In this document: positions 341 to 40,197 of the stretch, one piece after another
How positions within the stretch are numbered: position 1 is the first letter of the stretch
Layout: each line of letters starts with the position of its first letter
Assembly (NCBI GenBank): GCA_002269645.1
Contig: NIVC01000611.1
Location: forward strand, 62,001 to 126,000
Source: Macrostomum lignano
Lineage: Eukaryota
Reading direction: 5' to 3'
DNA length: 64,000 bases
The notes under the pieces: generated by a model
What the model saw: the letters and a program-made list of their open reading frames with translations, nothing else
Told to the model about the DNA's origin: nothing
Database searches by the model: none
Made by a program: the position numbers and the translations under genes

Positions 341-984
341 GCCTCTGCATCACAGAAACTCTCTATTGGGCCTTATGAAGTTCAGGCTTCAGACTTAAGC
401 TCAACCAATGCAACCTTCAATGTAGTGCGCCAAGTTCCTCGCCGGCTAATACATTTTAAAACGAGATTTTAGCATGAATTAATTTTGACATTTTTTAGAT
501 GTTTTGCGTTCTTTTATGGAAAAAATGTTACTAAAATTTTTTTCAGTGGGTTCTGTCTGTGTTGTAGGTGCTGTTCCGGTGGTCTGCTACTAAATTATAG
601 TGAAATAATTAGTTATATCTTTGAGAAAATGCATCCCATCAATTCCTTAGCTGTTGTGAAAGTCGCATTCAGTCACTTGTTAATATCATTATTTTTTGTT
701 TGAATCTAGGCATCTGTCTGTTAGTTTATTTGTTAAAATATGCTGCTGGGCATTTTGAATTCTACACTTCTCTATAACTTGTGCTCATCGACACTATGAA
801 TGTGCCTTTATAGGTGATGCGATTATAATGGCTGTCCTGGTGTTAGTGCTTCAGCAATGCTTAATATATTATTAATAAATGTCTGCAAATGGTGTACCTG
901 TTTTAGCCATAGTTTTAATCTGGTGTTCACCGCGACTCACATGTACTAATTTCAAGATCACTGTTATTTAGTAGACACCATTCA

Positions 985-1487
985 CTATCTAATAAATTGG
1001 CATTCACTATCCAAGGAATCGCCATTCACTATCTATAAGGAATCGCCATTCACTAAGGAATTGGCATTCACTAAGGAATCGCCATTCACTAAGGAATTGG
1101 CATTCACTAAGGAATCGCCATTCACTAAGGAATTGGCATTCACTAAGGAATCGCCATTCACTAAGGAATTGGCATTCACTAAGGAATCGCCATTCACTAA
1201 GGAATCGCCATTCACTAAGGAATCGCCATTCACTAAGGAATCGCCATTCACTAAGGAATCGCCATTCACTAAGGAATCGCCATTCACTAAGGAATCGCCA
1301 TTCACTAAGGAATCGCCATTCACTAAGGAATTGGCATTCGCTAAGGAATTGGCATTCGCTAAGGAATCGCCATTCACTAAGGAATCGCTATTCACTAAGG
1401 AATCGCCATTCACTAAGGAATCGCCATTCACTAAGGAATCGCCATTCACTAAGGAATCGCCATTCACTAAGGAATTGGCATTCGCTA
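985..1487. repeat. 18-bp minisatellite (ATTCACTAAGGAATCGCC) just upstream of the DDX55 start
   Basis: Tandem units; source of spurious ORFs 1033..1467 and 1061..1513. Confidence 0.95.
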
Positions 1488-1521
1488 TTAAAAGAAATCG
1501 CTACACCTCTTGATCTTCTGC

Positions 1522-4500
1522 ATGCGGCAGGAGCAGCAATCGCAGCAGCCCCTCCCCCGGCCAAGCGGCTGGCAGCTGGACAGAGTCGAGCTGTCCCCAG
1601 CTGCCCAATCCGCCATCGCGGCTCTTGGCTTCGCTGCGCCAACCCCAGTCCAGCGAGCCTGCATCCCGCTGCTGCTCAGCAACAAGGATGTAGCGGCGGA
1701 GGCTGTGACGGGGTCGGGCAAAACCCTGGCTTACCTGTTGCCGGCTCTGGAGCTGCTGTCCCGCCGGCCGGAGCCTTGGGGCCGCGGAGAAACCGGCGCC
1801 GTGATTGTGGCGCCGACAGCTGAGCTGGCCAGGCAGGTGAGCGGAGTGCTGGCTCTCCTGCTGCCGCACTATGAGCGGCATCGCCAGCCCGGCAGCTGTG
1901 GCCAGCTGCTGCTCACTAGGGGCTGCTCGCAGGCTGAGATTGATGCGGCTCTGGCTAAGGTGAGTACTATGAGGCTGGGATAATGCTAAAACTCCCGATA
2001 TACCAAGATCTCTATTGGTATACCCCTATTAGTAAGACCCCTATTTCCAAGTTCCCCATTCCCAATACTCTATTTCCAAGTTCCCCATTCCCAATACTCT
2101 ATTTCCAAGTTCCCCATTCCCAATACTCTATTTCCAAGTTCCCCATTCCCAAGTTCCCCATTCCCAAGATCCCCATTCCCAAGCTCCCCATTTCCCAGAT
2201 CATCACTCCTCAGATCCCCACTCCCCAGATCCCCACTCCCCAGATCCCCATTCACCAGATCTCCATTCCCAAGATCCCCATTCCCAAGATCCCCATTCCC
2301 AAGCTCCCCATTTCCCAGATCATCACTCCCCAGATCCCCACTCCCCAGATCCCCATTCACCAGATCTCCATTCCCAAGATCCCCATTCCCAAGATCCCCA
2401 TTCCCAAGATCCCCATTCCCAAGCTCCCCATTTTCCAGATCATCACTCCTCAGATCCCCACTCCCCAGATCCCCACTCCCCAGATCCCCACTCCCCAGAT
2501 CCCCATTCACCAGATCTCCATTCCCAAGATCCCCATTTCCAAGACCCCCATTCCCAAGATCCCCATTCCCAAGCTCCCCATTTCCCAGATCATCACTCCC
2601 CAGATCCCCACTCCCCAGATCCCCATTCACCAGATCCCCATTTCCAAGACCCCTATTTCCAAGTTCCCCATTCCCAAGACTCTATTTCCAAGTTCCCCAT
2701 TCCCAAGACCCCTATTCCCAAGATCCATATTCCCAAAATCCTCATTCCCAATCCCAAGATCCCCATTCCCAAGATCCTCATTCCCAACATCAAGATCCTC
2801 ATCCCCAAGATCCGTCCTGTGAAGTTATGAGCCGAGTACGCAAACGAGACGAGTATTTGCAAATTGGAAGTGGAAAAACACACGCGAAATCTTATGCGTG
2901 GTGTCGCAGTATTTATTAAATTGAATTCACTTAGCATAAATTACTAGATTGAGATTAGGGGTGGGTGCCGCGCTGGCCAACAAAGAGAGAAGAAAGTGAA
3001 TTAGATAACTCCAGCCCCCGACGCTGGGGTGGCAAGGGTGCACTAGAACTAAAACTCAAATAACAAATAATAATAATCTAACTGAGTGAACTATTAAGTG
3101 GCCAATGCCATACGTATAACTAAGCTATCTGACACGTCCCATGATCCCCATTCCCAAGATCCCCATTCCCAAGTTCCCCATTCCCAAGATCCCCATTCCC
3201 AAGATCCCCATTCCCAAGATCCCCATTCCCAAGATCCCCATTCCCAAGTTCCCCATTCCCAAGATCCTCAAAGCCTCAGCCTCCCCCAAACACGCAGGGC
3301 GCCACCCTGGTCGTAGCCACCCCGCGGCGTCTCAGCGACCTGTTGGAGTCGAGCTGCTCAACCGGCGAGCGGCTTCGCTCGGCTCTGCGCTCGGTGGAGC
3401 TGCTGGTGCTGGACGAAGCGGACCGGCTGCTGCAGCAGGGCTTCCGCCCGGCCCTGGACGCCCTGCTGTCCCGCCTGCCGAAGCAGCGCCGCACGGGGCT
3501 GTTCAGCGCTACGCAGACTCGCGAGCTGGAGCAGCTGGTGCGGGCCGGCCTGCGCAACCCGGTGTCGGTGCGGGTGACAGAGAAGCTGGCCAGGGTGCCG
3601 GCCGGCCTCACCAACCTCTACTGCGAGATTGCGGCCGATAAGAAACTGGACTTCCTGTGCACCTTTTTGATGGAGCATGCCGCTGAGCAGAAGGTTAGTT
3701 AGAGCTCCGTGTCACTGGCGATGATGTCTGGGATTTAAATTAGTCTTCCGAAGATATTGGGATATGGGGATTTCAGTTGGGATATGAGGATTTCAGTTGG
3801 GATTTGGGGTTTTCAGTTAAGTTGTGGGGATTTCAGTTGGGATATGAGGTCTGAGGATTTCCGTTGGATTATGGGGATTTCAGTTGGGATATGGGGATTT
3901 CAGTTGGGATATGGGGATTTCAGTTGAGATTTCGGGTTTTCAGTTAAGTTGTGGGGATTTCAGTTGGGATATGGGGATTTCAGTTGGATATTGGGGATTT
4001 TAGTTGGGATATGGGATTTGAGTAGATTGTTGGGATTTGGGAAAATTTTTGGGATTTGAGTAGATTTTTGGGATTAGAGTAACATCGCTGCCAATAATCT
4101 CCCGCAGGTGCTGGTATTCGTGGCCACCTGTGCCGTAGCGGACTACCTGGCCAAGGCGCTGCGCCAGCTCCGCCCCGACCTGCCGCCGCTGTCCGCCATC
4201 CACGGCCGGATGCGCAAGAAGCGCCGCTCCGTGTTCGCCGCCTTCGCCAGCTGCCGCTCCGGCGCCCTCGTCTGCACCGACGTCCTGGCTCGCGGCGTCG
4301 ACTTGCCCGACGTTGCCTGGGTGCTGCAGCTGGACCCGCCCACCAGCACCGAGCATTTCGTGCACCGCTGCGGCCGCACCGCCCGCATTGGCCGACTGGG
4401 CCGGGCCATGCTGCTGCTGCAGCCGCACGAGCTGGAGTACGTGGAGTTCCTCAGGCTGAACCAGGGCGTTGCGGTGAGCAACTGGGGCTCGTCTCATGGC

Positions 4501-7500
4501 TGAGATTCAACCCCATGAGTATGAGCTTGGTCTCTATTGCGAGTGAGATTCGTCTCTATGTAGAGTGAGATTCGTCTCTATCTAGAGTGAGATTCGTCTC
4601 TATCTAGAGTGAGATTCGTCTCTATCTAGAGTGAGATTCGTCTCTATCTAGAGTGAGATTCGTCTCTATCTAGAGTGAGATTCGTCTTTAATCTAGAGTG
4701 AGATTCGTCTCTATCTAGAGTGAGATTCGTCTCTAATCTAGAGTGAGATTCGTCTCTATCTAGAGTGAGATTCGTCTCTATCTAGAGTGAGATTCGTCTC
4801 CATCTAGAGTGAGATTCGTCTCTATCTAGAGTCACATTCGTCTCTATCTAGAGTGAGATTCGTCTCTATCTATAGTGAGATTTGTCTCTATCTAGAGTCA
4901 GATTCGTCTCTATCTAGAGTGAGATTCGTCTCTATCTAGAGTCAGATTCGTCTCTATCTAAAGTGATATTCTTCTCTACCTATAGGGAGAATCATCTCTA
5001 TTTAGAGTGAGATTTTTCCCTATCTAGTATGTGGGATTCGTCTAGCTGTAGAAAGGCTTCATTAATGTGTCCGCTCGCATAGTCGCCTATTAGTTTGAAC
5101 TCAGCAGCAGTTAACTCTCTTCCATTTCAACTCCAGCAGCTGTCTCACCCACCCGTCTCGTTCCATCAGGTGGAGCGCCAGGAGCTTCAGCAGGTGTACA
5201 GCAGTCTGACAGACTTGGGCCCGCAGCTGCGCCAGCTGTGCAGTCGGGACCGCCTGCTGTGCGAGAAATCCGTCCGAGCTTTCGTGTCCTACGTGCAGTT
5301 CTACAGGAAGCACGAGTGCCGCCTGCTGTTCCGCCTGCGCGACCTCAACATCGGCCGACTGGCCACGGCGTTCGGGCTGCTGCGCCTGCCCAGAATGCCC
5401 GAGCTGCGCAAGCTGCCCGTGACCGACTTCGACCCGGTCAAGGACGTCGACGTCGGGGCGATTCCGTATCTGGATCGGAGCGTTCGGCGGCAGCGGGCGA
5501 AGCAGGAGCAGCTGCGGCAGGTGCGTGTAGCGAATCCCTTTCCATTTACATTTTTGATCGCTAATCTCATTTTATAATTCTTGATCCCAAATCCCATTTT
5601 GTAATTTCTGATCTCAGATCCCATTTTGTAATTTCTGATCCCAAATCCCATTTTGTAATTTCTGATCCCAGATCCCATTTTGTAATTTCTGATCCCAAAT
5701 CCCATTTTGTAATTTCTGATCCCAGATCCCATTTTGTAATTTCTGATCCCAAATCCCATTTTGTAATTTCTGATCCCAGATCCCATTTTGTAATTTCTGA
5801 TCCCAGATCCCATTTTGTAATTTCTGATCTCAAATCCCATTTTGTAATTTCTGATCCCAAATCCCATTTTCTAATTTCTCTAATTTCTGATTCCAGTTCC
5901 ATTTCTTAATTTCTGATCCCAGATCCCATCGGGCCATGTACGAATTTCTGATCCCAGACCCCTTTCACTAATTTCTGATCCCAGATCCTATTCACTAATT
6001 TCTGATCCCAGATCCCATTCACTAATTTCTGATCCCAGATCCCATTTTGTAATTTCTGATCCCAGATCCCATTTTGTAATTTCTGATCCCAGATCCCATT
6101 TTGTAATTTCTGATCCCAGATCCCATTTTGTAATTTCTGATCCCAAATCCCATTTTCTAATTTCTAATTTTTCTAATTTCTGATTCCAGTTCTATTTCTT
6201 AATTTCTGATCCCCCCGCCGGGCTGAATTTAGCCGTCTTTTATCCGATGCGTTGTCCGGAGTTTAATCCGGCAGGAATAGCAAATTTACATGCAAAAAAA
6301 CGGACGAAAACCGGACGAAAAGTTTACAAAACGGATGAAAGTGTTGAAAATATGACGTTTATCCGGTTTGGTATCCGGCTGTGTGTCCGGTTATTGCCCG
6401 ATAAGTAATCCGGAGGAAGCCGGATGGGAGAGCGGAGCCAATTCCGGATGAAAACCGGATGAAATGTATGGATGTTACAGCCGGATAAGAAACCGGAGCC
6501 ATTTCCGGATCAAATGTATGGATACCTGTATACTGTCGTCGGATAATAATGGACATTCTAGATGCTTATTACTCAGCCTTAATTTGTGCTCTTTACAGCG
6601 GCTTCCAAAGGTTTGGCACAAAAATTGCACTGTGTGGCGGCTATTATAGCTACGGCTCCTGCTCCTATCTATAGCTGCTGCTCCTGCTATGATTCTGCTC
6701 GTATCTGTATGAACAAGCGAGGAGCTCTAGAGAAGCTTACTAGTAGAAAGCTTTCGGCAGGGGCGCGTCCAGAGGTTTCAGGATGGGGGGCCCATCAGGA
6801 GAGGGGAGAGAAGAGAGAGGAAGGATGAAAGAAGAGAGAAGAGATGAGATATGAGAGATGAAAGAGGGGAAAGGAGAGATGAGAGAGCAGAGACAAGAAA
6901 TGTGACAGTAGAGCTAGAACAGAGGAGAGAGGAGAGGGAAGAGAAATATGTGAGAGCAGACATGAGAGACAGTGGGAGAGAAGTGGAGTGGATGGGAGGA
7001 GAAAGGAGAAAAAAGGGGGGAGAATCGAGAGGACAAGAAGAGAGGGGAAGGGAGAGAAGAGGGAGGAGAGGAAAGAGAAGAATGGAGAAGGGAGAGAGTA
7101 GAAAGGAGAGGAGATGGGAGAGCAGGAGAGGTGAGAGATGAGAGGGAGGAGAGAGTAGAGAGGGGAGATGAGAAAGTAAAGGGGAGAAAGTTGAGAGAAG
7201 AGTGGAGAGTTGGGAGAAGAGAGGAGAGGAGAGTGAGGAGTGAGAAGAGGGGAGAGAGGAGAGAGTAGAGACGAAAGAGAAGAGAGGTGAGGGAAGATCG
7301 ACGAGAGAAGAGGGGAGAGAGGAGATCGGAAAAGAAGAGAAGAGGAAACAGAAGAGAAGATAGAAGTTTCAAAGGATCCGAGGGACATAGAGAGAGACAG
7401 GAAGCCAGAGAATTTGCCAATCTTTCGAAAGACAAGTTTTTGTTTGAGTTGACTCTAGATTTTAGAACTACGACAGATATACTTGTAGATATAAGCGAAA

Positions 7501-26237: not shown

Positions 26238-26569
26238 CATGGCATCTTGTGCCTATGCGCTGAACTGGGCTACTTACTAAGTAGCATGATTTGAACATCT
26301 GATTTTCCGCAAATGTATTTTATATCGAAAAATTTATGCATTTATGTTCTCGATACTTTTGATTTATGATAGGAAAGCCGTGATGTTTTTATTTGTCTAT
26401 TTGATTCATTGTGTCAACGTTTTCTTCATTTCTCAGCAGCCTCTATACGTAGTAGGTTTTGGACTTTTATTTTTGCACACTAAAGGCCCTGGCTATTTTG
26501 AGCTTTGCTCTGCTCTCAAAGTCTGGGGTGAATATTATTTCTATCATAGATTCCATTTGTGCCCTGAAG

Positions 26570-27480
26570 GTTGTAGGATCCGATCTGTGCCCTGAAGGTT
26601 GTAGGATCCAATCTGTGCCCTGAAGGCTATCATAGGATCCGATCTGCGCCTTGAAGGCTATTATATGATTTGATCTATGCCATGAAGGTTATATGATTTC
26701 ATCTGTGCCCTGAAGGTTATAGGAAGATTTCATCTGTGCCCTGAAGTTTATAGGAAGATTTGATCTGTGCCTGAAGTTTATAGGAAGATTTGATCTGTGC
26801 CCTGAAGGTTATAGGAAGATTTGATCTGTGCCCTGAAGGTTATACGAAGATTTGATCTGTGCCCTGAAGTTTATAGGAAGATTTGATCTGTGCCTGAAGT
26901 TTATAGGAAGATTTCATCTGTGCCCTGAAGGTTATAGGAAGATTTGATCTGTGCCCTGAAGGTTATAGGAAGATTTGATCTGTGCCCTGAAGGTTATAGG
27001 ATTTCATCTGTGCCCTGAAGGTTATAGGAAGATTTGATCTGTGCCCTGAAGGTTATAGGAAGATTTGATCTGTGCCTTGAAGGTTATAGGAAGATTTGAT
27101 CTGTGCCCTGAAGGTTATAGGAAGATTTGATCTGTGCCCTGAAGGTTATAGGAAGATTTGATCTGTGCCCTGAAGGTTATAGGAAGATTTGATCTGTGCC
27201 CTGAAGGTTATAGGAAGATTTGATCTGTGCCCTGAAGGTTATAGGAAGATTTGATCTGTGCCCTGAAGGTTATAGGAAGATTTGATCTGTGCCCTGAAGG
27301 TTATAGGAAGATTTGATCTGTGCCCTGAAGGTTATAGGAAGATTTGATCTGTGCCCTGAAGGTTATAGGAAGATTTGATCTGTGCCCTGAAGGTTATAGG
27401 AAGATTTGATCTGTGCCCTGAAGGTTATAGGAAGATTTGATCTGTGCCCTAAAGGTTATAGGAAGATTTGATCTGTGCCC
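26570..27480. repeat. 31-bp CTGTGCCCTGAAGGTTATAGGAAGATTTGAT minisatellite upstream of PNKP
   Basis: Near-identical tandem units. Confidence 0.95.
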
Positions 27481-27596
27481 TAAAAAAGTTTAGAAGATCT
27501 GTTAAGTCCAGGTCCTTGGAATGTGTCCTTTTTAAGTTATTTCATCAGTCCGCATAATTTCTTAAGTTTTCAACTTTCGTTTGTTTTCCAGCTGCC

Positions 27597-30500
27597 ATGC
27601 GCGCCAGTTTGGTTTGCCCTCGCACGGGCAGAACAGTTTGCACCATAGACAGCGGCGGCAGAGTTGTCATCGGCCGTCAGCCACAGTTCGACATACGAGA
27701 CGCGGCCTGTTCTCGTCAGCAAGCCAGATTAGATTTGCAACAAACAGACAGCGGTAGCAGCGGTGACAGTGACTCATTGACAGTGACTTGTGTTGGAGCT
27801 GGTAGGTTGTATGTCAACTCTAACAGTGATGACAAAGGTGGTGATCAGCGTCAACTATTGACTATGGGCGAGTCGGCGAGATTAGCCAATGGCGACGCTT
27901 TGATACTTGGCAACGACTGTCTGCTGAAGGTGTTATTGGCACCTGAGGACTCGGAGCCGGTGGTAAAGAAGCGGAGACTCGAGCAATTGAATGCGGGCGA
28001 GGGGGCCCAGCAAGATAGCGATGAAAATCCTAGTCAAGTTGATCTTCAATTGAACTTAATGCGCCAAGCAGCCGCTCGGTTCTCCAGCCAATCAGATTGC
28101 GCAGCCAGCGCCAGCCAATTGGAAGCCTCCAACTCGGCCAGCCAATCAAATCCATCCGACTCTCCCAGCCAATTAAAGCCGACTCCAACTGGTTGGCGCG
28201 ATTTCGGCGCAGTGCTTGTCTACACGACGCCCGGCTGTTTGCCCAGCCGCAAAATCGCCGGATTCGATATGGACGGCACGCTGATTACCACGCAGTCTGG
28301 TCGAGTTTTTGCCAAAGATCTGGCGGATTGGAAAGTGATTTATCCCCAGATGCCTGGCCGATTGAAATCTCTGGTCGCTGAGGGCTACAAAGTGGCACTG
28401 TTCTCTAATCAGAAAGGTGTCGAGGTTGGCAAAGTGAGAGTGGAGGATTTGAAAGTCAAAGTGAGTATATGTCCTACTATGCCAGTTTATTTCTTTGTTT
28501 TGAATAGCCAATGATGACTCAATTGCTACTCTTGATGTGTCTTATGATGAGAAGGTTTACCACCTTGTTTCTGTCTGAGGCTATGGAACTTTTCTTTTCT
28601 GTTTTCCTTATTAGATAGATAGGCCGGTATGATGACCCAATTGCTACTCTTGACCTGTTGGTATGATGAGCTGCATCTACCACCATTCACTGTGTCTGAG
28701 GCCCGGATTTATTGTACGTTCGTGCATCAGAATTTTACAAATTATTTAGTATTATAATACAAATTATTTTCTAACTTGCTTGCTAACACACCAGCGTAAT
28801 TCTTTTTTCGTCTCTTAAGTATCGCCTTCACCGCCTTCCGAGAATCACCCTTCACCGCCTTCCGAGATCACCCTTCACCGCCTTTCAAGAATCGCCTTCC
28901 GTGAATCGCCCTTCACCGCCTTTTGAAAATCGCCCTTCACCACCTTTTGACAAGCGCCCTTCACCGCCTTCTGAAAATCGCCCTTCACCGCCTTCCGAAA
29001 ATCGCCCTTCACTGCCTTCCGTGAATCGCCCTTTACCGCCTTCCGAAAATCGCCCTTTACCGCCTTCCGAAAATCGCTCTTCACCGCCTTCCGAAAATCG
29101 CTCTTCACCGCCTTCCGAAAATCGCCCTTCACCGCCTTCTGAAAATCGCCCTTCACCACCTTTCGAGAATCGCCGTTCACTGTCTGCGTTTCTCATCTGT
29201 CTCAAAAAATTATATTTATATGGCCCATATGATGACCTAATTGCTACTCTTGACCTGTCGGTATGATGAGCTGCATCTACCACCAGTCACAATGTCTGAG
29301 GCCAGAATTTTGGGGCAAGATTTATTATAAATTCGATGAACTGTTTATTATGACTTTTAACTGTCCTTGCACTAATGCAAAGTTAATTGTTTTATATGTT
29401 TGTCTTATAAGGCCGATATGATGACCTAATTGCTACTCTTGACCTGTTGGTATGACGAGATGCATCTACCACCATTTTAATTGTCTAAGGCCTGGATTTA
29501 TAGTGATGTTTGAACTGCAGCTATTATTGAAAAGTATTTTCATATCAGTTTTGAAATATAATCACGAGTCTTATTGAACTAAATCGCTTGATAACGAAAC
29601 AGATTGAGAGAGTTTCCGCTCGCCTGGGCGCACCAATGCAAGTTTTTCTTAGCGTGCGCGGTCAACGATATCGCAAACCCTGCACTGGCATGTGGCACCT
29701 ACTGGAGCGAGATGAATTCAATGCGGGCCTCCGACCGGATCCGGCTGAGTCGTTTTACGTTGGAGACGCAGCTGGCAGACCAGCTGAGACTGGTAAAGGT
29801 GAGATTTACTAGTACTGCATTTTTCTTTTTCTGTTACTTCTTTTTTCTCAGATTTCCCCGTATACCGTAGAACTTCCCCGTATGGGATTTCCCCGTATGT
29901 GAATTCCCCGTATGGGATTTCCCCGTATGTGAATTCCCCGTATGGGATTTTCCCGTATGGGATTTCCCCGTATGGGATTTCCCCGTATGTGAATTCCCCG
30001 TATGGGATTTCCCCGTATGGGATTTCCCCGTATGGGATTTCCCCGTATGGGATTTCCCCGTATGTGAATTCCCCGTATGGGATTTCCCCGTATGGGATTT
30101 CCCCGTATGGGATTTCCCCGTATGGGATTTCCCCGTATGGGATTTCCCCGTATGGGATTTCCCCGTATGGGATTTCCCCGTATGGGATTTCCCCGTATGG
30201 GATTTCCCCGTATGGGATTTCCCCGTATGGGATTTCCCCGTATGGGATTTCCCCGTATGGGATTTCCCTGTATGGGATTTCCCCGTATAGGATTTCCTCG
30301 TATGGGATTTCCCCGTGTAAAATTTCCCCTGGGATTTAAAAGTTGGTACACTTTAGTCATTAGACGTTTCTTAAAGTTTAATTAAAACGACGGCCAATAT
30401 GATGACCTAATTGCTACTCTTGACCGGCTGGTATGATGACACATCTACCACTATTTACTGTCTGAGGCCTGTTCTTACTATTTTTTAAATATATCTTTGT

Positions 30501-32418
30501 TCGGAGATGTGAGTAACACGTTAATTAAGGCCCATATGATGACCTAATTGCTACTCTTGACCATTTGGTATGATGATCTGCGTCTACCACCATTCACAGT
30601 GTCTGAGGCCTCAATTAAGTGTAGACCATTTCAGGATTCAGTCCGGATGTTTTAGGGGATTTTTCCTCTGGAATTGCTTCTAGTGAGAGTTTCCTAGTTT
30701 GTAAATACCTTAGAAATTTAGGTTTTTGGGGTTTCTTTGTCTTGTTTTTTCTCGCTTGGATTTCCCTGGCTTGGATTTCTTTTTTTAGATTTCCCTCCAT
30801 ACATGCGCAACCTCCAAAATTTCGGTCGGCCGTGCGACTTAGTTTCAACAAAAATGCGACGTAGTTTTTGGCGAAAAATGCGACTTACATGTAAAAAACC
30901 CTAAAGCAAAATTAACGCAACTTTGGGTAAACGGCAGGAGTATTTATAACTGTCTTATTAAGCCAAAATGCCTCGTCAGCTACTTAGTTTACTACTTGGT
31001 TGTTTTTTCGGTGGGCATTTTTGCGACTTCCTTGGTTGGCCGCCAAATCGGTCGGCCGGATCGGCCGACTGTTGCGCATGTATGTTTCCCTCTTTGGATT
31101 CCAATGTCCTAGATTTCCCTCTCTAAATTTCCGTCTTGGATTTCCCTGTATTTGATTCCCCTGTCTTGGATTCCCCTGTCTTGGATTCCCCTGTCTTGGA
31201 TTTCCCTGTACAGATGTGCATGAGAAAAATCCAATACAAACTGCCAGGTCGCACCGGCCGCAAAGCCGACTTCTCCTGCTCGGATCGGCTATTCGCTCTC
31301 AACTGCCGTATGAGCGCCTTCCACACGCCCGAAGAGTTTTTTCTGGACCATCGCCCCGTGCCGCTGGCCCAGTGCCGCATGCCGGAGTTCGATCCCACAG
31401 TTCTGCTTAATGCAAAAAATGCCCACGCAGATTGCTCGCCTACAGACGAGTTGCGTCAGTTTTTGCTTGACGATTCTTCTAGTAGCAAGTCGGCTGCCCT
31501 GCTTGTGCTGCTCGTGGGCTACCCGGCCAGCGGCAAGTCCACTCTGTGCGCTCAAATCAGCCGCTTGCTGGCCGGCCAGGGCGCTGCGGGTCCAGCTGTC
31601 TGCGTTGTGAATCGGGACCGGCTGGGCACCTGGCAGAAGTGCGTGCAGTCTGCCGAAACTGCGCTCAAGTCTGCTTCTGGCAGAGCCATTGTGCTGGTGA
31701 GAGTTCATGGGGCTTGATAATTGGGGGTCAGTAGCCCAACAACAGGATCTGGGAGGCTGGCCCAGCAACTGGGGATCTGGGAGGCTGGCCCAGCAACTGA
31801 GGATCTGGGAGGCTGGCCCAGCAACTGAGGATCTGGGAGGCTGGCGCAGCAACTGAGGATCTGGGAGGCTGGCCCAGCAACTGAGGATCTGGGAGGCTGG
31901 TTCAGCAACTGAGGATCTGGGAGGCTGGTCCAGCAACTGAGGATCTGGGAGGCTGGCCCAGCAACTGAGGATCTGGGAGGCTGGCCCAGCAACTGAGGAT
32001 CTGGGAGGCTGGCCCAGCAACTGAGGATCTGGGAGTGCAGTCCCACGCCAACCCCAACCCGCAGGTGGACAACACCAGCGTGGACCAGGAGAGCCGGCAG
32101 CGCTATATCGAGTGCGCCCGCCGTTGCAAAGCCGGGGCCGCCTGCCTGGTGATGCAGTGCAGCCTGGCCCAGTGCCTGCACAACGAGCGGTACCGCCGCA
32201 TTGTGGAAGAGGAGGCCGTGGACAATCCAGCGGACGGGCCGCCCAGCAAGAAGCGACGCGAGCCGGTGAGCGAGATGGTGTTCAACCAGATGCGGGCCAA
32301 GTTCGTTGAGCCCAGCCTGTCCGAAGGATTTGATCGCATTTTGAAGGTGCCGTTTGTGCCGAGCTTTCAAGTGGATGAGCACAGGAGACTGTACTGTCAG
32401 TATCTGATGGAGAAATAG
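27597..32418 (+). CDS. PNKP: Bifunctional polynucleotide 5'-kinase/3'-phosphatase, 4 exons
   Basis: Exons 27597-28460, 29603-29798, 31248-31696, 32065-32418 (phases 0,1,0). N-terminal FHA (VIGR...CSRQQ), HAD motif FDMDGT, FSNQ, RKPCTGMW, FYVGDAAGR, DFSCSDRLFALN, TPEEFF, P-loop GYPASGKS, VDNT, PSLSEGF. Confidence 0.93.
28506..28582 (+). ncRNA. Box C/D snoRNA, SNORD76-like, copy 1 (PNKP intron 1)
   Basis: AGCC/GGCT terminal stem; box C ATGATGA at 28511; guide AATTGCTACTC + D' TTGA; C' ATGATGA; ACCACC; box D CTGA at 28575. Confidence 0.8.
28622..28703 (+). ncRNA. Box C/D snoRNA, SNORD76-like, copy 2 (PNKP intron 1)
   Basis: GGCC/GGCC stem; C ATGATGA 28629; AATTGCTACTCTTGA; C' ATGATGA; CTACCACCA; D CTGA 28696. 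Confidence 0.85.
28825..29175. repeat. 24-bp CGCCCTTCACCGCCTTCCGAAAAT minisatellite between snoRNA copies 2 and 3
   Basis: Tandem units. Confidence 0.9.
29221..29304 (+). ncRNA. Box C/D snoRNA, SNORD76-like, copy 3 (PNKP intron 1)
   Basis: TGGCC/GGCCA stem; C 29229; same guide, D' and C'; D CTGA 29296. Confidence 0.85.
29410..29493 (+). ncRNA. Box C/D snoRNA, SNORD76-like, copy 4 (degenerate boxes)
   Basis: AGGCC/GGCCT stem; C 29418; guide intact; C' changed to ATGACGA and box D changed to CTAA (29485), so possibly a pseudogene. Confidence 0.65.
29870..30330. repeat. 15-bp TTCCCCGTATGGGAT minisatellite in PNKP intron 2
   Basis: Tandem units; source of GISPY/GNPIR pseudo-ORFs. Confidence 0.95.
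30392..30469 (+). ncRNA. Box C/D snoRNA, SNORD76-like, copy 5 (PNKP intron 2)
   Basis: GGCC/GGCC stem; C 30399; AATTGCTACTCTTGA; C' ATGATGA; D CTGA 30462. Confidence 0.85.
30528..30611 (+). ncRNA. Box C/D snoRNA, SNORD76-like, copy 6 (PNKP intron 2)
   Basis: Extended stem TTAATTAAGGCC / GGCCTCAATTAA; C 30536; same guide; D CTGA 30603. Confidence 0.85.
31745..32035. repeat. 28-bp GATCTGGGAGGCTGGCCCAGCAACTGAG minisatellite filling PNKP intron 3
   Basis: Same unit occurs at 40720-41460, 52395-52590 and 53180-54300. Confidence 0.95.
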
Positions 32419-32794
32419 CATACGCTTACCGTTGTTGCTATGGTTACCGATTGCAACGCCAATATTGCATCATTTTGCTTACAAAAGTACTGGTATTTGC
32501 AATCGAAATCGTAAAATGTATTTTTTTGATGAGTTTGCATCGATAGCTCTTTCAGTTTTGTAGGTTCACTATTATCATTTTTTATTCCTGTATGCATGCT
32601 AGCTATTGTCTCATAATTACCCATTCGAAACATACATTTAATTTGCTTTATCATTTCATGACTCATGGCTTCATATTTTGGTGCCGGTTTATGACTTTAT
32701 TGACGTTGGAGAGAGAAATTTGTGCATAAAAATTGACTTTTATATTCAAATAGTTCATTTTGACTGCTAGGCTGCTTTCATTTATTATCTACGC

Positions 32795-33305
32795 AATTCC
32801 CATGATCCCTGAGCCACCTGAGCAATTCCCCATGATTCCTGAGCCACCTGAGCAATTCCCCATGATTCCTGAGCCACCTGAGCAATTCCCCATGATTCCT
32901 GAGCCACCTGAGCAACTCCCCATGATCCCTGAGCCACCTGAGCAATTCCCCATGATCCCTGAGCCACCTGAGCAATTCCCCATGATTCCTGAGCCGCCTG
33001 AGCAATTCCCATGATCCCTGAGCCACCTGAGCAATTCACCATGATCCCTGAGCCACCTGAGCAATTCCCCATGATCCCTGAGCCACCTGAGCAATTCACC
33101 ATGATCCCTGAGCCACCTGAGCAATTCACCATGATCCAGGAGCCACCTGAGCAATTCCCCATGATCCCTGAGCCACCTGAGCAATTCACCATGATCCCTG
33201 AGCCACCTGAGCAATTCACCATGATCCCTGAGCCACCTGAGCAATTCCCCATGATGCCTGAGCCACCTGAGCAATTCCCCATGATCCCTGACCCACCTGA
33301 GAAAT
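32795..33305. repeat. 30-bp ATGATCCCTGAGCCACCTGAGCAATTCCCC minisatellite between PNKP and ATP5S-like gene
   Basis: Tandem units. Confidence 0.95.
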
Positions 33306-33374
33306 TCATCTTCACTTGTCGTTCATTCCTCAAGTTTTATTACTTAGCAACGCATTAATAATTTCATTTCCTGC

Positions 33375-34209
33375 ATGCCTGCCATTTTTGCTTACAAACG
33401 CCAATTGCTGCTTCTAGCAGAAGCCGCAGCCGGTGCAGGTGACCGGCTTGGGCCGGGGCTGCTGCAGCAGAGCCGCGGCTACTTTGCTTGGCTGGTTGGC
33501 GTGTGGAATAAAGTGGACCGCGATCGGATCAAACAGGTGTCTGTTAAAATGCCGCGTTTGGCGTCTCATCTCTTCTGTCTCCCTTTGTCAGACCACTCTA
33601 ATTCCCCAGATCAGATCCCTCTACTACCTCTCAGCCTAATTTCTAATCTTTAATCGATATATCCCATCAGTAATTGATCTCGAGTATTTACTCCTTAACC
33701 CTGATTTATAATAATTAATCTCCAAATCATTCATCTGTCCCCAGGTCGGCCCGGACCACGCCTGCGCCGAATGGCTGCTCCGCAACGGCGCCTCAGTCGT
33801 GTGGGCCGACGATCGCGGCGCTACGTCGGACTACAACCAGCTGGGCGGCGTGCCGCCCGACCAGCGCATCCAGGAGATCCTGGCCGACACGGCCTCGCTA
33901 AGCTCGGCCGGGTTTCCCCACCTGCTGGGCCTGAGCAGATTGAGTTCGATGCGGCTGAAGAACTGCCCCTACTTGGACGATTCCGCGTTCACCTACCTGG
34001 CTGATCACTGCCGGCTGGAGCGGCTGTTCGTTAGCCAGTGTCCTCAGGTGACCCCGAAGGGAGTGCTGGAGATGGCCCGCATCGAGGGCCTGAGGCACCT
34101 GCGGCTTGGCCAGATGGCCAGCCTGGGTGCCTCCGACTGGGCCCGGCTGAGCGAGCAGCTGGTCTCCAAGCTGCCGAAATGCCAGTTGGAGTTTGAGACT
34201 GGAGGCTAA
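33375..34209 (+). CDS. ATP5S: Mitochondrial ATP synthase subunit s (factor B)/DMAC2L-like LRR protein, 2 exons
   Basis: Exons 33375-33536 and 33745-34209 (phase 0). FAWLVGVWNKVDRDRIKQ|VGPDHACAEWLLRNGA...DYNQL closely parallels the factor B signature (WLNAVFNKVDYDRI.DVGPDRAASEWLLRCGA); LRR-like C-terminus. Confidence 0.85.
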
Positions 34210-34921
34210 GAGGCTGTTTTTAGGAAGAAACATTTGATTGAGGATTTGATATGAGCGTATCGTACCTATGTTTTCTGATTGAAGTGATCAATCAAATGTA
34301 ATTATCTGCCGCCATTCATTATCCCAGTTCATAAAACACATGGGGTTCCATAAATCCTAAATCTTAAATCCCCAAATCATAAAACCACACAGGATTCCAA
34401 AAAATCCTCAAATCCTAAACCACATGAAATCCAATAAAAATCCCCAAGTCAAAAGTCACATGAGATCCCATAAAAATCCCTAAATCATAGGTCACATGGC
34501 ATCCCATAAAAATCCAAATCATAAATCACATTTAATCTCAAAAAAATCCCTAAATCACAAATCACAGAGATCCCACAATAGTCACAAGTTGATCGCATTA
34601 TTGCTTGCTTACTTCTTGGACAATATTTTTGCTTCCAATGTTCTTAAATTCGCCTCTAGCATTTATGCTTACGAGTATACATGTAAATTAATAGGATGCA
34701 GTTTTGAAGGCCATTGTGTAATGGTATTGATTATTCTATCTGGCAAATAAATCAATTTTGTAACAATTGTTGTGATGAATTTTGATCTCTTGAGTCATCG
34801 GCTATTGAGACGTATCGCACTATGCATTTTTCTATCTTTTTGGATTTATATAGGATGCTTAATATTTCTCACCTGTTCACTTTTCAATTTTACTATTAAT
34901 AACTTTTTCTGGCAAACTTCC

Positions 34922-35461
34922 ATGGCTCCCTCAGCTGCTTCGCCTGCCAGAGGCTGCCTTGGCCCCGTAATGAAAACACGCAGATCACGGGCTACTATGC
35001 ATACTACTGGCGCCGGCTGTAGCAGTAGTATGATCCGCGTCAGCGGTTTACCGCCAGGAGCAAGCGCGGCAGATCTGGAGCGGGCCTTCTCCAGATTCGG
35101 CCGCGTCCTGTCAGTCTGGTCGCCAACAGTCGCTGTCGTCATCGTTGAAATGTCCGATCATTGCGCCGCACTGGAAGCTGTCGATCGGCTGGACGATTCG
35201 CCTCTGTGCGGCGCTCGGGCTCGGCTCGAACTCGCGGCTCATTGTCGCGGCCTGGTTGAGTCCTGCTACGATTGCGGCGCCGAAGGTCATTTTGCCTATG
35301 GCTGTCCCTGGGCGGGCGCGGCTGGCCCGGCTGTTGAGCAGTTGGCCACTGAGATGAGCAGGCAGCTGGTGCTGCACTCTGGTGCTGCCCCTGTGACTGC
35401 ACGCTTAGCTAGTGGCTTCCAACAAGAACCATATTGGAATGTGACAGGATGTAAAACATAA
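34922..35461 (+). CDS. Divergent single-exon RRM + CCHC zinc-knuckle protein, SRSF3/7 paralog without RS domain
   Basis: IRVSGLPPGASAADLERAFSRFGRVLSVW...LDDSPLCGARARLEL and CYDCGAEGHFAYGC align with the neighbouring SR gene. AATAAA signals at ~35463 and ~35482. Confidence 0.7.
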   Translation: MAPSAASPARGCLGPVMKTRRSRATMHTTGAGCSSSMIRVSGLPPGASAADLERAFSRFGRVLSVWSPTVAVVIVEMSDHCAALEAVDRLDDSPLCGARARLELAAHCRGLVESCYDCGAEGHFAYGCPWAGAAGPAVEQLATEMSRQLVLHSGAAPVTARLASGFQQEPYWNVTGCKT

Positions 35462-36774: not shown

Positions 36775-37310
36775 CCATCCATGACCCTTTCCTCACCGGA
36801 TCCATGACCCTTCCTTCACCGGATCCATGCCCCTTCCCTCACCGGATCCATGACCTTTCCTTCACCGGATCCATGACCCTTCCTTCACCGGATCTATGAC
36901 CCTTCCTTCACCGGATCCATGACCCTTCCCTCACCGGATCCATGACCCTTCCCTCACCGGATCCATGACCCTTCCCTCACCGGATCCATGACCCTTCCCT
37001 CACCGGATCCATGCCCCTTCCCTCACCGGATCCATGACCTTTCCTTCACCGGATCCATGACCCTTCCTTCACCGGATCCATGACCCTTCCCTCACCGGAT
37101 CCATGACCCTTCCTTCACCGGATCCATGACCCTTCCCTCACCGGATCCATGACCCTTCCCTCACCGGATCCATGACCCTTCCCTCACCGGATCCATGACC
37201 CTTCCCTTACCGGATCTATGACCCTTCCTTCACCGGATCCATGACCCTTCCTTACCGGATCCATGACCCTTTCCTTACCGGATCCATGACCCTTCCCTCA
37301 CCGGATCCAA
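36775..37310. repeat. 23-bp CCGGATCCATGACCCTTCCCTCA minisatellite in the probable 5'UTR intron of the SR gene
   Basis: Tandem units between a donor (CAG|GTAATT, 36241) and an acceptor (CACGCAG, 37342). Confidence 0.9.
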
Positions 37311-37357
37311 TACCTTTTCCTCACGCATCGCCGCCCACGCAGAGCCGATCAGCCGCA

Positions 37358-40197
37358 ATGTCCGGCATGCGCCTTGATTGCAAAATCTACGTCGGCGAGT
37401 TGCCGCGCGACGCCAGCGAGAGCGAACTGGAGCGCGCCTTCAAGTCGTTCGGCCGGGTCCGCCAGGTGTGGATCGCCCGCAATCCGCCCGGCTTTGCCTT
37501 CATTGAAATGGACGATCCGCGCGACGCCGAGGACGCCGTCCGCGATCTGGACGGGTCCACCATTTGCGGCGTCCGGGCCCGCGTGGAAATGTCCAGCGGC
37601 CGCTCCAGGCCCAAGGGATTCGACCGTGGCGGTCGGGACCGCGGCGGCCCAAGGCGCGGCTTCGATCCCAACGACCGGTGCTACGACTGCGGCGAGAAGG
37701 GCCACTACGCCTACAACTGCCCGAGGAAGCGGGGTGGCGGCGGCGGCGGTCGCGGAGGTCGAAGCCGGAGCCGCAGTCGCAGCCGGAGTAACGATAGGGA
37801 CAGGCGGGGCAGGTGAGGATTTATTGCACTGTTTGCGCTAATGACGGCTGAGCAATGACTGTTGCAGGTGTTTCTGTTTGTATTTTGCCTGACTCCAGTT
37901 CTCAGTGTGCATCGGCGGGGGGCGTAGTGATTTCGCCTCTGGCTTTTATTCCCCCTCTCCCTACCCTCCCTCGCCCCTCTCCCCACCCTCCCCCCTCACC
38001 CACCCTCACTTGTCCCCTGTCCCTACCCTCCCTCTCCCCCACCCCCTACCCTTCCTCTCTCTCTCGTTTCCACCTTCTTACCTTCTGCGTCCACCTAGAC
38101 GAGAACTATTCTATCAATTTTTGTTCTATTGAGTTCTTTTACTCTAAACCAAGCTGCACATCTGAAGGCGCATTACCTGTTTTTATCTAATGTTTCCTGT
38201 TTTAAGTCATTATTACATATACTACTAAGTTTCCGTAAAAGTGAGCAGTAGTATGTCTAACAAGTTGACGCGCAATATCTAAATGTTATTTTTTATCAAA
38301 ACAGAAAATTTATCGCAAACATGAGTCCTAACTGTCTAATTGATTGATTCAAAGTTGGGGTGCTTAAATTTGTTACTGACTGTTTAATTTGTTCCAACAA
38401 ACAAATGTTCCAGGATCTTCTACTGCAACAAACTTCTTCACCAGGCTCAGCCCAGTTTTGCGCGCTGCACAGACCAATTAGAGAAAGACTTGAGCTTCGA
38501 CTACTTGAGAATAGGAGTTTCTGCTACTTAGAGTAGTACAAAATAACTAGCTGTCTTTCCCTGTAAAATTCAATGCATTTATTTTTTAAGAATTCCTAAT
38601 CTTTTTTGAGGAACAGAATTGCATTTAGACACAAAAAGTAAAAAGTCCCTTTGCTTCATTCTCGGGGCTGAGTCTAAAATCTAATGTACACTCAGCCCCG
38701 AGTGTAGAGATATGACAAATCTCGAAACTGGGGTTATCCGTAACTTTTTCCGATATGTAGCGTAACTAACTTTATCGAAGAAAAATTTACACTTATTTGC
38801 CACGGCTGCAGTCGTAGATATTTTAGTCTAACCTGCACATCTGTAGCATATAATAGCTCGTACTAGGCAGGCGGGTTTTTCAGGATACAAGTGTATTGCC
38901 GATATGTAGCGTTAGTAACTTTATCAAGGCAAAATTTACATTGTTGCTGACAAAATACGAGTACTAGGCCAGGTGGATGTAAGTCGTTTGCCGATATGTA
39001 GCGTAGAAAACTTAATCAAGCCAAAATTTACAGTTTATTAAAACTAATAATACTAAGACAAGATTTTTGTCCGATATGTAGCGCATTTTTGCAATCAAAG
39101 TTAAGGATAAGCCAAAGAGTTTTATTCAAGCTAAATGTCTAAGCATAAGAATAGGCAGGCTTAAGTTAGAGTCAGCGACCTAGCGTCAGCTCGTGACTGC
39201 AGCAGCATCACCAGCATCTTCAGCAGCAGCAGCAGCAGCAGTGCATCTCTGCGCAACAATGCTCTCCCCGGGGTCCCTCACAGCCAGTTTGATCTGCCTC
39301 TAATTGCTTTGCGAATACATAGTGGGGAGATTCTGCACGTTGTCAGGCTGCTGCTCAGCTTCTTCAGCTGGCTGCTCGCGCCCGCTGTGATTGGCTGTGT
39401 TTAATCTCTGCCCGATCGCGCGCTGACAGCCCGTTCGGTCAGTTCAGTTATGCCAATCACTGATTGGCATGTTGTTTTAAATTATTAATTATTTATCATA
39501 TTCAAGTAAACTCACGCATTGAGAATAGATATGTATATAGGTAAACTTGTACTGCAGTCAACTGTTGACATTCGATCTGGTTTTCTCCGAATACAGCTGG
39601 ATTATATTTGGCTAAAAAATCATCCATCGCCATCACTATCTCGCCATCAATGTCATTTTTAGGCGCAGCCCGTCCTACTCGGATCGCAGTCGCAGTCGCT
39701 CACCGCCTCCGCGAAGGCGCAGGTAATTGTTTGACGATATGTATCGAAGTTAACTTTACAAACTGCTTAAATTAAGCTAGATCTTTTATGCAGCCGATAT
39801 GTATCGAAAGTAAAAGTAGAAAACTGGTTAAGTAGGTTAAGGCTACTCATTTTCTATAAAGCCGATATGTTTCGAAAGTAAATTAAAAAAACTGTTAAGT
39901 AGGTTGAAGCTACTAATTTTTTTAGTCCGATATGTATCGAAAGTCTATGTAAGTGTTAACTAGGTCAAACTTACTAAATTTTCTATAAAGCCGATATGTA
40001 TCGAAAGTAATCGTGAAAGTGTTACAGAAAATTTAGCTTATTTTCTGTGCATGTATCGAAAGCAATTACTCTCAATATCGTGAAGTTGTTGCTATATAAT
40101 AAGGTCTTATACAACGCCACGCCAAGTTCTGAAATTTGCTGTTTCCCTTTAAACCGTCCATTTCAGGTCTCGCAGCGGCAGCAGCAACTCCCGCTAA
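37358..40197 (+). CDS. SRSF7: SRSF7/SRSF3 (9G8/RBP1)-like splicing factor: RRM + zinc knuckle + RS domain, 3 coding exons
   Basis: Exons 37358-37812, 39663-39722, 40167-40197 (phases 2,2). KIYVGEL (RNP2), [30 protein letters not shown] (RNP1), [14 protein letters not shown] knuckle, RS repeats. A non-coding 5' exon probably ends at 36240. Confidence 0.88.
38750..40065 (+). promoter_or_regulatory. Two clusters of the conserved motif CCGATATGTA(G/T)CG in SR-gene introns
   Basis: CCGATATGTAGCG at 38750, 38899, 38991, 39071; (C)CGATATGT(A/T)TCGAA at 39735, 39794, 39862, 39927, 39991 and a partial copy at 40051. Flanks are diverged. Regulatory function is inference. Confidence 0.5.

Follow-up and report, generated by a model that had tools for sequence, protein, structure and literature searches.

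Which RNAs are encoded by six similar units in the introns of a flatworm DNA-repair gene, and do these units have the properties of working genes? The units lie in the gene PNKP of Macrostomum lignano, within a stretch of 64,000 nucleotides from contig NIVC01000611.1 (assembly GCA_002269645.1, positions 62,001 to 126,000, forward strand) that is referred to as the window in the following. Our analysis indicates that introns 1 and 2 of PNKP very probably harbor six tandemly duplicated genes for box C/D small nucleolar RNAs (snoRNAs) of the U76 type, which would guide methylation of ribosomal RNA (rRNA). An earlier note on this DNA had proposed six SNORD76-like box C/D snoRNAs, four in one PNKP intron and two in another, and both the anatomy of the units and the exon model of the host gene bear out this layout.

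Anatomy of the six units

The motif AATTGCTACTCTTGA is present at exactly six positions of the 64-kb window, namely 28521, 28639, 29239, 29428, 30409 and 30546, and exclusively on the + strand. The chance expectation for this motif is 0.18, and none of 100 shuffled sequences contained it six times. The occurrences mark six units of 78–84 nt each, all on the + strand, that together span 28504–30611. The PNKP exons at 27597–28460, 29603–29798, 31248–31696 and 32065–32418 are separated by GT-AG introns and encode, after splicing, 620 residues with matches to the Pfam families FHA_2, PNK3P (7e-48) and AAA_33 (kinase). The closest database relatives of this protein come from M. lignano, and the deposited sequence PAA79880.1 includes the translation without any change and has a single additional residue at the N-terminus. 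All six copies are located within introns in sense orientation to PNKP and have no poly(A) tails. The host gene, its first two introns and the copies are arranged as follows:

27597–32418, + strand: PNKP host gene, encoding FHA, PNK3P phosphatase and kinase domains
28461–29602, + strand: PNKP intron 1, 1142 nt, GT-AG, containing copies 1–4 and a 24-bp minisatellite (28825–29180) between copies 2 and 3
28504–28584, + strand: snoRNA copy 1, stem AUAGCC/GGCUAU, guide CUCAAUUGCUACUC, canonical boxes (C AUGAUGA, D' UUGA, C' AUGAUGA, ACCACC, D CUGA); the most divergent copy
28622–28703, + strand: snoRNA copy 2, stem GGCC/GGCC, canonical boxes
29221–29304, + strand: snoRNA copy 3, stem UGGCC/GGCCA, canonical boxes
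29410–29493, + strand: snoRNA copy 4, box C' AUGACGA and box D CUAA, the latter with G to A at 29487
29799–31247, + strand: PNKP intron 2, 1449 nt, GT-AG, containing copies 5 and 6 and additionally a 15-bp minisatellite (29874–30316) and an insertion that resembles a miniature inverted-repeat transposable element (MITE; 30798–31084)
30392–30469, + strand: snoRNA copy 5, 78 nt, with a short 3' half and ACCACU for ACCACC
30528–30611, + strand: snoRNA copy 6, stem AGGCC/GGCCU, canonical boxes

Every copy carries box C (AUGAUGA) near its 5' end, followed by a guide region of 14 nt that invariably ends in AAUUGCUACUC (in the DNA, AATTGCTACTC) and by box D', which reads UUGA (TTGA) throughout. A short spacer, in which copies 2–6 could form an ACC/GGU mini-hairpin, leads to box C', and this is AUGAUGA in all copies but copy 4. 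The sequence ACCACC is found within the otherwise variable region 9–11 nt before box D; box D itself is CUGA in five of the six copies. Terminal stems of 4–6 bp close the units.

In M. lignano, at least three PNKP loci have been assembled (L125, L126 and L001); each contains the six copies in 4+2 order, giving at least 18 gene copies per assembled genome. L125 is the locus of the window itself (NIVC01000611.1, GCA_002269645.1) and encodes PAA79880.1, with exons that are 100% identical and the same snoRNA spacing. L126 is near-identical to the window locus, and the exons of L001 differ from it by 1–4%. A generic scan for box C/D snoRNAs (RTGATGA ... CTGA with a terminal stem of at least 4 bp) on both strands of the window (128 kb) recovered copies 1, 2, 3, 5 and 6, whose box D is intact, and no other candidate. 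A covariance model built solely from the flatworm copies scored copies 1, 2, 3, 5 and 6 with 77.8, 107.4, 110.4, 93.8 and 106.8 bits, respectively. With this model, no further copies came up in the remainder of the window or in the regions flanking the three PNKP loci, and neither Rfam in E-value mode nor our own C/D scan found other snoRNAs in the window.

Predicted release from the introns

Pairing of the terminal stem is expected to place box C (AUGAUGA) next to box D (CUGA). Based on the established biology of snoRNA-protein particles (snoRNPs), the resulting C/D kink-turn would be bound by Snu13/15.5K, which would recruit Nop58, Nop56 and fibrillarin. In copy 4, the single base change in box D (G to A) should prevent this kink-turn from forming. 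The RNAs would be transcribed as part of the PNKP pre-mRNA and freed from its introns after splicing; since the copies are intronic and sense-oriented, PNKP transcription should supply them. Given that each intron holds several copies, either an endonuclease would cut the spacers or some longer, snoRNA-ended RNA would persist. The spacers between copies measure 37, 517, 105 and 58 nt, and copy 4 alone is situated near a 3' splice site, at a distance of 109 nt. A dedicated endonucleolytic route in flatworms as in plants and yeast, or stable snoRNA-capped minisatellite RNAs from the PNKP introns, appear rather unlikely. If either were realized, the expression of a DNA-repair gene would be tied to a ribosome-modification guide and possibly to a repeat-bearing non-coding RNA.

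The second of these options corresponds to the long non-coding RNAs with snoRNA ends (sno-lncRNAs) of mammals. In introns with two snoRNAs, exonuclease trimming can halt at both snoRNPs and leave a sno-lncRNA behind, as summarized in a review (PMC11028025). Mammalian sno-lncRNA loci share with the flatworm locus the presence of two or more snoRNAs and an intervening sequence in one intron (PMC11028025); in the flatworm, a stable intervening RNA would be hypothetical. The candidate region in PNKP would be the stretch of about 0.5 kb between copies 2 and 3, which consists mostly of the 24-nt minisatellite and is bracketed by these two copies in all three loci. However, minisatellites occupy every PNKP intron and both flanks of the gene and are thus probably a general property of the genome, and their repeat number varies by locus, the spacing of copies 2 and 3 being 600, 602 and 804. 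We consider it unlikely that the introns yield sno-lncRNAs besides or instead of mature snoRNAs; in such an RNA, the candidate stretch could act as a repeated platform for protein binding.

Assignment to the U76 type

Rfam 15 was scanned both at the gathering threshold and in E-value mode, and no SNORD76 family was listed in these scans. The best Rfam family for all six copies was SNORD24 (RF00069) with 34.4, 29.8, 24.4, 23.9, 23.8 and 23.7 bits, the first two and the last of these scores belonging to copies 1, 5 and 2, respectively; all of them fall below the gathering threshold of 41. This raises the question of whether the copies are orthologues of U24 (SNORD24, yeast snR24), which has two guides, so that a guide at box D would additionally methylate the equivalent of 28S-C2338. 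Both types concern the same rRNA neighborhood, and their relationship became apparent from metagenome contigs that we scanned for TGATGA-N(3-12)-TTGCTACTCTTGA. Roughly one third of the more than 120 stretches obtained are real C/D snoRNAs, and these are of two kinds: a U24/snR24-like kind with the D-box guide CACCAAGAUCN-CUGA and a U76-like kind with ACCACC 9–12 nt before box D and without AAGAUC. About 40 U24/U76-type snoRNAs of environmental eukaryotes share UUGCUACUCUUGA. In many of these, which are of the non-animal, protist or fungal type, this identical D' guide is joined with the U24-type D guide CACCAAGAUCNCUGA, which argues for a common ancestor of the U24 and U76 types.

Despite this shared guide, the 3' half of the flatworm copies does not agree with a U24 identity, which we regard as very unlikely. 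U24 contains a second functional guide, ACCACCAAGAUCN-CUGA, next to box D that serves the C2338-equivalent site, whereas the flatworm copies lack AAGAUC there and possess only ACCACC, which is followed by 9–11 variable nt. Accordingly, the nucleotide five positions before box D is not complementary to rRNA. A profile hidden Markov model (HMM) of the U24-like environmental set yields four alignments out of six that end ahead of the D guide; with the profile of the U76-like set, five of six extend nearly to the end. The bit scores of the two profile HMMs were rejected as a discriminator, as the shared 5' half dominates them and renders them similar; the extent of the alignments alone discriminates.

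A vertebrate reference for U76 was available from metagenome data. Two contigs, L072 (Ga0065711_1029476; 737–6274) and L017 (Ga0181612_172491), represent a vertebrate GAS5-like locus in which Rfam recognizes SNORD74, SNORD75, two members of the snR60/Z15 family (SNORD77/80-type), SNORD79 and SNORD47, one per intron. The order of these snoRNAs is that of human GAS5, and we take the snR60/Z15-family member that follows an unnamed unit of the locus to be SNORD77. Based on its position between SNORD75 and this next snoRNA and on this order, the unnamed unit is SNORD76. It served as a positive control and matched SNORD24 with 40.1 bits but no other Rfam family. It was also the best outside match of the covariance model built from the flatworm copies (50.5 bits, E=6e-10). 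Over aligned positions, the flatworm copies are 78–88% identical to the vertebrate SNORD76 of L072 (copy 3, 82%).

Flatworm copies and vertebrate SNORD76 have the same order of boxes, the same guide ending in ...UUGCUACUC, the unusual box D' UUGA, a box C' of the form (A/G)UGAUGAG, ACCACCA 9–11 nt before box D and the 3' end CUGAGGC. The distance from ACCACC to box D is 11 nt in the vertebrate L072 copy and 10 nt in full-length human SNORD76. Oligonucleotides published for human SNORD76 reconstruct CCACAATGATGACAGTTTATTTGCTACTCTTGAGTGCTAGA ... GAGGATCTTAACCACCATTATCTTA and cover ACCACCATTATCTTA but not box D (PMC5390076). They support the layout of vertebrate SNORD76 that the earlier note had given, and they have TGATGAC, TTGCTACTCTTGA and ACCACCATT in common with the flatworm copies (PMC5390076). 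The D' guide of the flatworm copies together with UUGA is identical to that of the human oligonucleotides and of the vertebrate GAS5-locus copy. By these features of guide, boxes and alignment, the copies belong to the U24/U76 lineage and are of the U76 type.

Predicted rRNA target

Judged from their guide sequence, the copies most likely direct 2'-O-methylation of the adenosine in large-subunit (LSU) rRNA that is equivalent to human 28S-A2350 (yeast 25S-A1449). The LSU rRNA segment used for pairing, GAUCUUGGUGGUAGUAGCAAAUAUUC, is the generally conserved eukaryotic sequence. Independently, the conservation of two guide elements in the roughly 40 environmental relatives points to the same rRNA segment, and their common UUGCUACUCUUGA indicates that the rRNA target is invariant. 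The invariant UUGCUACU(C) just upstream of box D' would pair with the conserved LSU segment AGUAGCAA. Applying the fifth-nucleotide rule would then place the A of AGUAGCAA opposite the U that stands five positions before UUGA in UUGCUACUC, and this A would be methylated. SNORD76 has been reported to guide 28S-Am2350 (PMC6466398). For yeast U24, modification of two adjacent nucleotides with this guide has been described (PMC5389607), so a second methylation site at the neighboring G is possible for the flatworm copies.

Directly beside this target, the conserved LSU segment reads (U)GGUGGU, the complement of ACCACC(A), which would provide 6–7 accessory pairs; the C-to-U change of copy 5 (ACCACU) keeps this pairing via G-U. 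Since ACCACC is 9–11 nt away from box D and followed by variable sequence, it is not a canonical guide. Most likely, it contributes accessory pairing that would extend the 8-bp guide duplex, a role suggested by analogy: accessory pairing is a documented mechanism to stimulate methylation, although U76 is not listed among the examples (PMC3116282).

Several observations weigh against the interpretation of the copies as functional U76-type snoRNAs. The guide would form 8 contiguous Watson-Crick pairs with the conserved LSU segment, followed by an A-A mismatch and 2 more pairs, compared to about 11 contiguous pairs for human U76. The mismatch arises from AAUUGC in the flatworm guide instead of the vertebrate AUUUGC, a difference that likely amounts to one rRNA mismatch: opposite rRNA AGUAGCAAAUA the duplex would have one mismatch, whereas AGUAGCAAUUA would yield a perfect 11-bp duplex. 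The AAUUGC variant is also present in three unrelated environmental snoRNAs (L014, L066 and L101). Box D' UUGA departs from the CUGA consensus, as it likewise does in human SNORD76. Folding of the units with their flanks and spacers did not reveal consistent hairpins of the ribonuclease III type, for which the earlier note had suggested to inspect the flanks; extended outer stems were seen around copies 3 and 6, and that of copy 6 is broken in L001. Finally, the scan at the Rfam gathering threshold gave zero matches in the window as well as in the paralogous and orthologous PNKP loci. The earlier note had counted a missing Rfam match, together with a lack of discrete small RNAs, as grounds for refutation. 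As far as Rfam is concerned, this inference is invalid: a true vertebrate SNORD76 also stays just below the SNORD24 gathering threshold, and the missing match consequently does not dismiss the flatworm copies. Rfam 15 misses SNORD76.

Constraint and duplication history

The bodies of the six copies are 70–89% identical to each other (mean 0.81), whereas their 37-nt flanks reach identities of only 0.49 and 0.51, compared to 0.486 for random 37-mers from the introns. Hence, homology between the copies ends at the ends of the RNAs. The alignment columns without variation fall on the boxes, on the guide AAUUGCUACUCUUGA, on most of ACCACC and on the terminal GUCUGAGGC, in line with the earlier description of conserved boxes and guide between diverging spacers. 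The terminal stem covaries, with three pairs that are changed on both sides (GC/AU, UA/AU). Stem positions are paired in 92.6% of cases versus 16–49% when the 3' partner is slid, and pairing as high as observed arises in just 1 of 500 shuffles.

Comparison between PNKP loci extends this picture. Alignment of the window with L001 shows 6 differences over the 492 sites of the snoRNA bodies, compared to 22 differences over 691 sites, plus 20 gap columns, in those intron flanks that are free of repeats (Fisher p=0.03). Boxes, guide and ACCACC are free of substitutions between the two loci except for box D of copy 4, which reads CUGA in L001 and CUAA in the other sequences (window, L125, L126). As CUAA is found in two near-identical loci and is absent from the diverged L001, the loss must be recent. 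By this comparison, the missing box D of copy 4, which the earlier note had already pointed out, is a real and recent loss that arose by a single G-to-A change in one locus lineage, and copy 4 has probably been disabled recently. Its variant box C' does not stand out in the same way, UGACGA being common among apparently functional relatives. Overall, five of the six copies look functional.

The idea that the copies are snoRNA-derived retrocopies or tandem-repeat debris in decay rather than stable functional snoRNAs is very unlikely: the abundance of minisatellites at the locus and the broken box D of copy 4 would fit it, but the contrast between conserved bodies with invariant boxes, guide and ACCACC and flanks at random level, the compensatory changes in the stems, the intronic position of all copies in host orientation without poly(A) tails, and the better conservation of orthologous copies than of intron flanks across the three loci do not.

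Comparison with known systems and significance

Apart from the guide difference described above, the flatworm and vertebrate U76 genes differ in their hosts and in their number. Vertebrate SNORD76 resides in GAS5, a non-coding gene of the 5' terminal oligopyrimidine (5'TOP) class, the flatworm copies in the protein-coding PNKP; the GAS5-like locus has one snoRNA copy per intron, the flatworm six copies in 4+2 order. The missing GAS5 host and synteny weigh little, as host identity is not expected to persist across phyla. In the PNKP loci of Lottia (mollusc), Capitella (annelid) and Branchiostoma (amphioxus), neither the flatworm covariance model nor Rfam detected a snoRNA, which indicates that the association with PNKP is lineage-specific.

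The earlier note had considered several snoRNAs per intron to be unusual for animals. Intronic snoRNA clusters that often consist of paralogous isoforms generated by local duplication have been described in rice and Drosophila melanogaster (PMC2780460; Huang et al. 2004, 2005), so that the arrangement itself is already known from plants and from an animal. The flatworm locus resembles these clusters in having several snoRNA genes of the same orientation within a single host intron. It differs from them by its DNA-repair host, by the distribution of one family over two neighboring introns and by the interleaved minisatellites. Two environmental contigs contain paired genes of the U24 family on the same strand, spaced about 0.7–1.5 kb (L022, 2099–2173 and 2766–2842; L106, 518–603 and 1994–2078). 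Tandem duplication of this family is thus not peculiar to the flatworm.

A full-text literature search returned no paper describing snoRNAs of M. lignano, only incidental mentions. The locus is real but of an ordinary kind: it holds a known guide RNA in a multi-copy version specific to this lineage, and the type of arrangement is likewise known. It provides this flatworm model with a clearly recognizable methylation guide of the U76 type. It also implies that the U76 layout, with a single working guide and a retained ACCACC accessory element, predates vertebrates, and that snoRNA host genes are exchangeable, as illustrated by GAS5 in vertebrates and PNKP in M. lignano. In screens, candidates of the U24/U76 family should not be dismissed just because no Rfam match reaches the gathering level. 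With its multi-copy layout at three loci, M. lignano could become a test bed for the release of several snoRNAs from one animal intron.

Surroundings of the locus

PNKP is flanked by minisatellites on both sides and contains them in every intron, with units of 15–31 bp and 5–30 copies:

26558–27481, 28825–29180, 29874–30316, 31133–31209, 31744–32035 and 32793–33307: minisatellites of the PNKP region

Their repeat number varies among the three PNKP loci, as described above for copies 2 and 3; the spacing of copies 4 and 5 is 981, 861 and 872. Sub-threshold Rfam matches to DsrA, MIR9555, mir-23 and the glycine riboswitch at 29877–30336 were rejected as artefacts of the 15-bp minisatellite TTCCCCGTATGGGAT, caused by the small CCC/GGG hairpins that it contains. 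The MITE-like element of PNKP intron 2 ends in perfect inverted repeats of 14 bp (CATACATGCGCAAC), and a direct repeat of 8 bp (TTTCCCTC) borders it on both sides. L001 lacks it at the matching site and carries a 93% identical copy elsewhere, at 5559–5833.

Immediately before the PNKP start codon, at 27582–27596, lies a polypyrimidine-AG site that resembles a splice acceptor (ttgttttccag), and the deposited coding sequence, annotated as partial, starts 3 nt before the ATG. This suggests an acceptor either for spliced-leader trans-splicing or for an intron in the 5' untranslated region. Downstream of PNKP, an open reading frame judged by eye to be leucine-rich-repeat-like and two paralogous genes with RRM and CCHC zinc-knuckle domains are found at 33715–34206, ~34900–35400 and ~37300–37810. 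All three were read as open reading frames. The two paralogues resemble splicing factors of the SRSF7 type, and their counterparts in L001 have weak Pfam matches to RRM_1.

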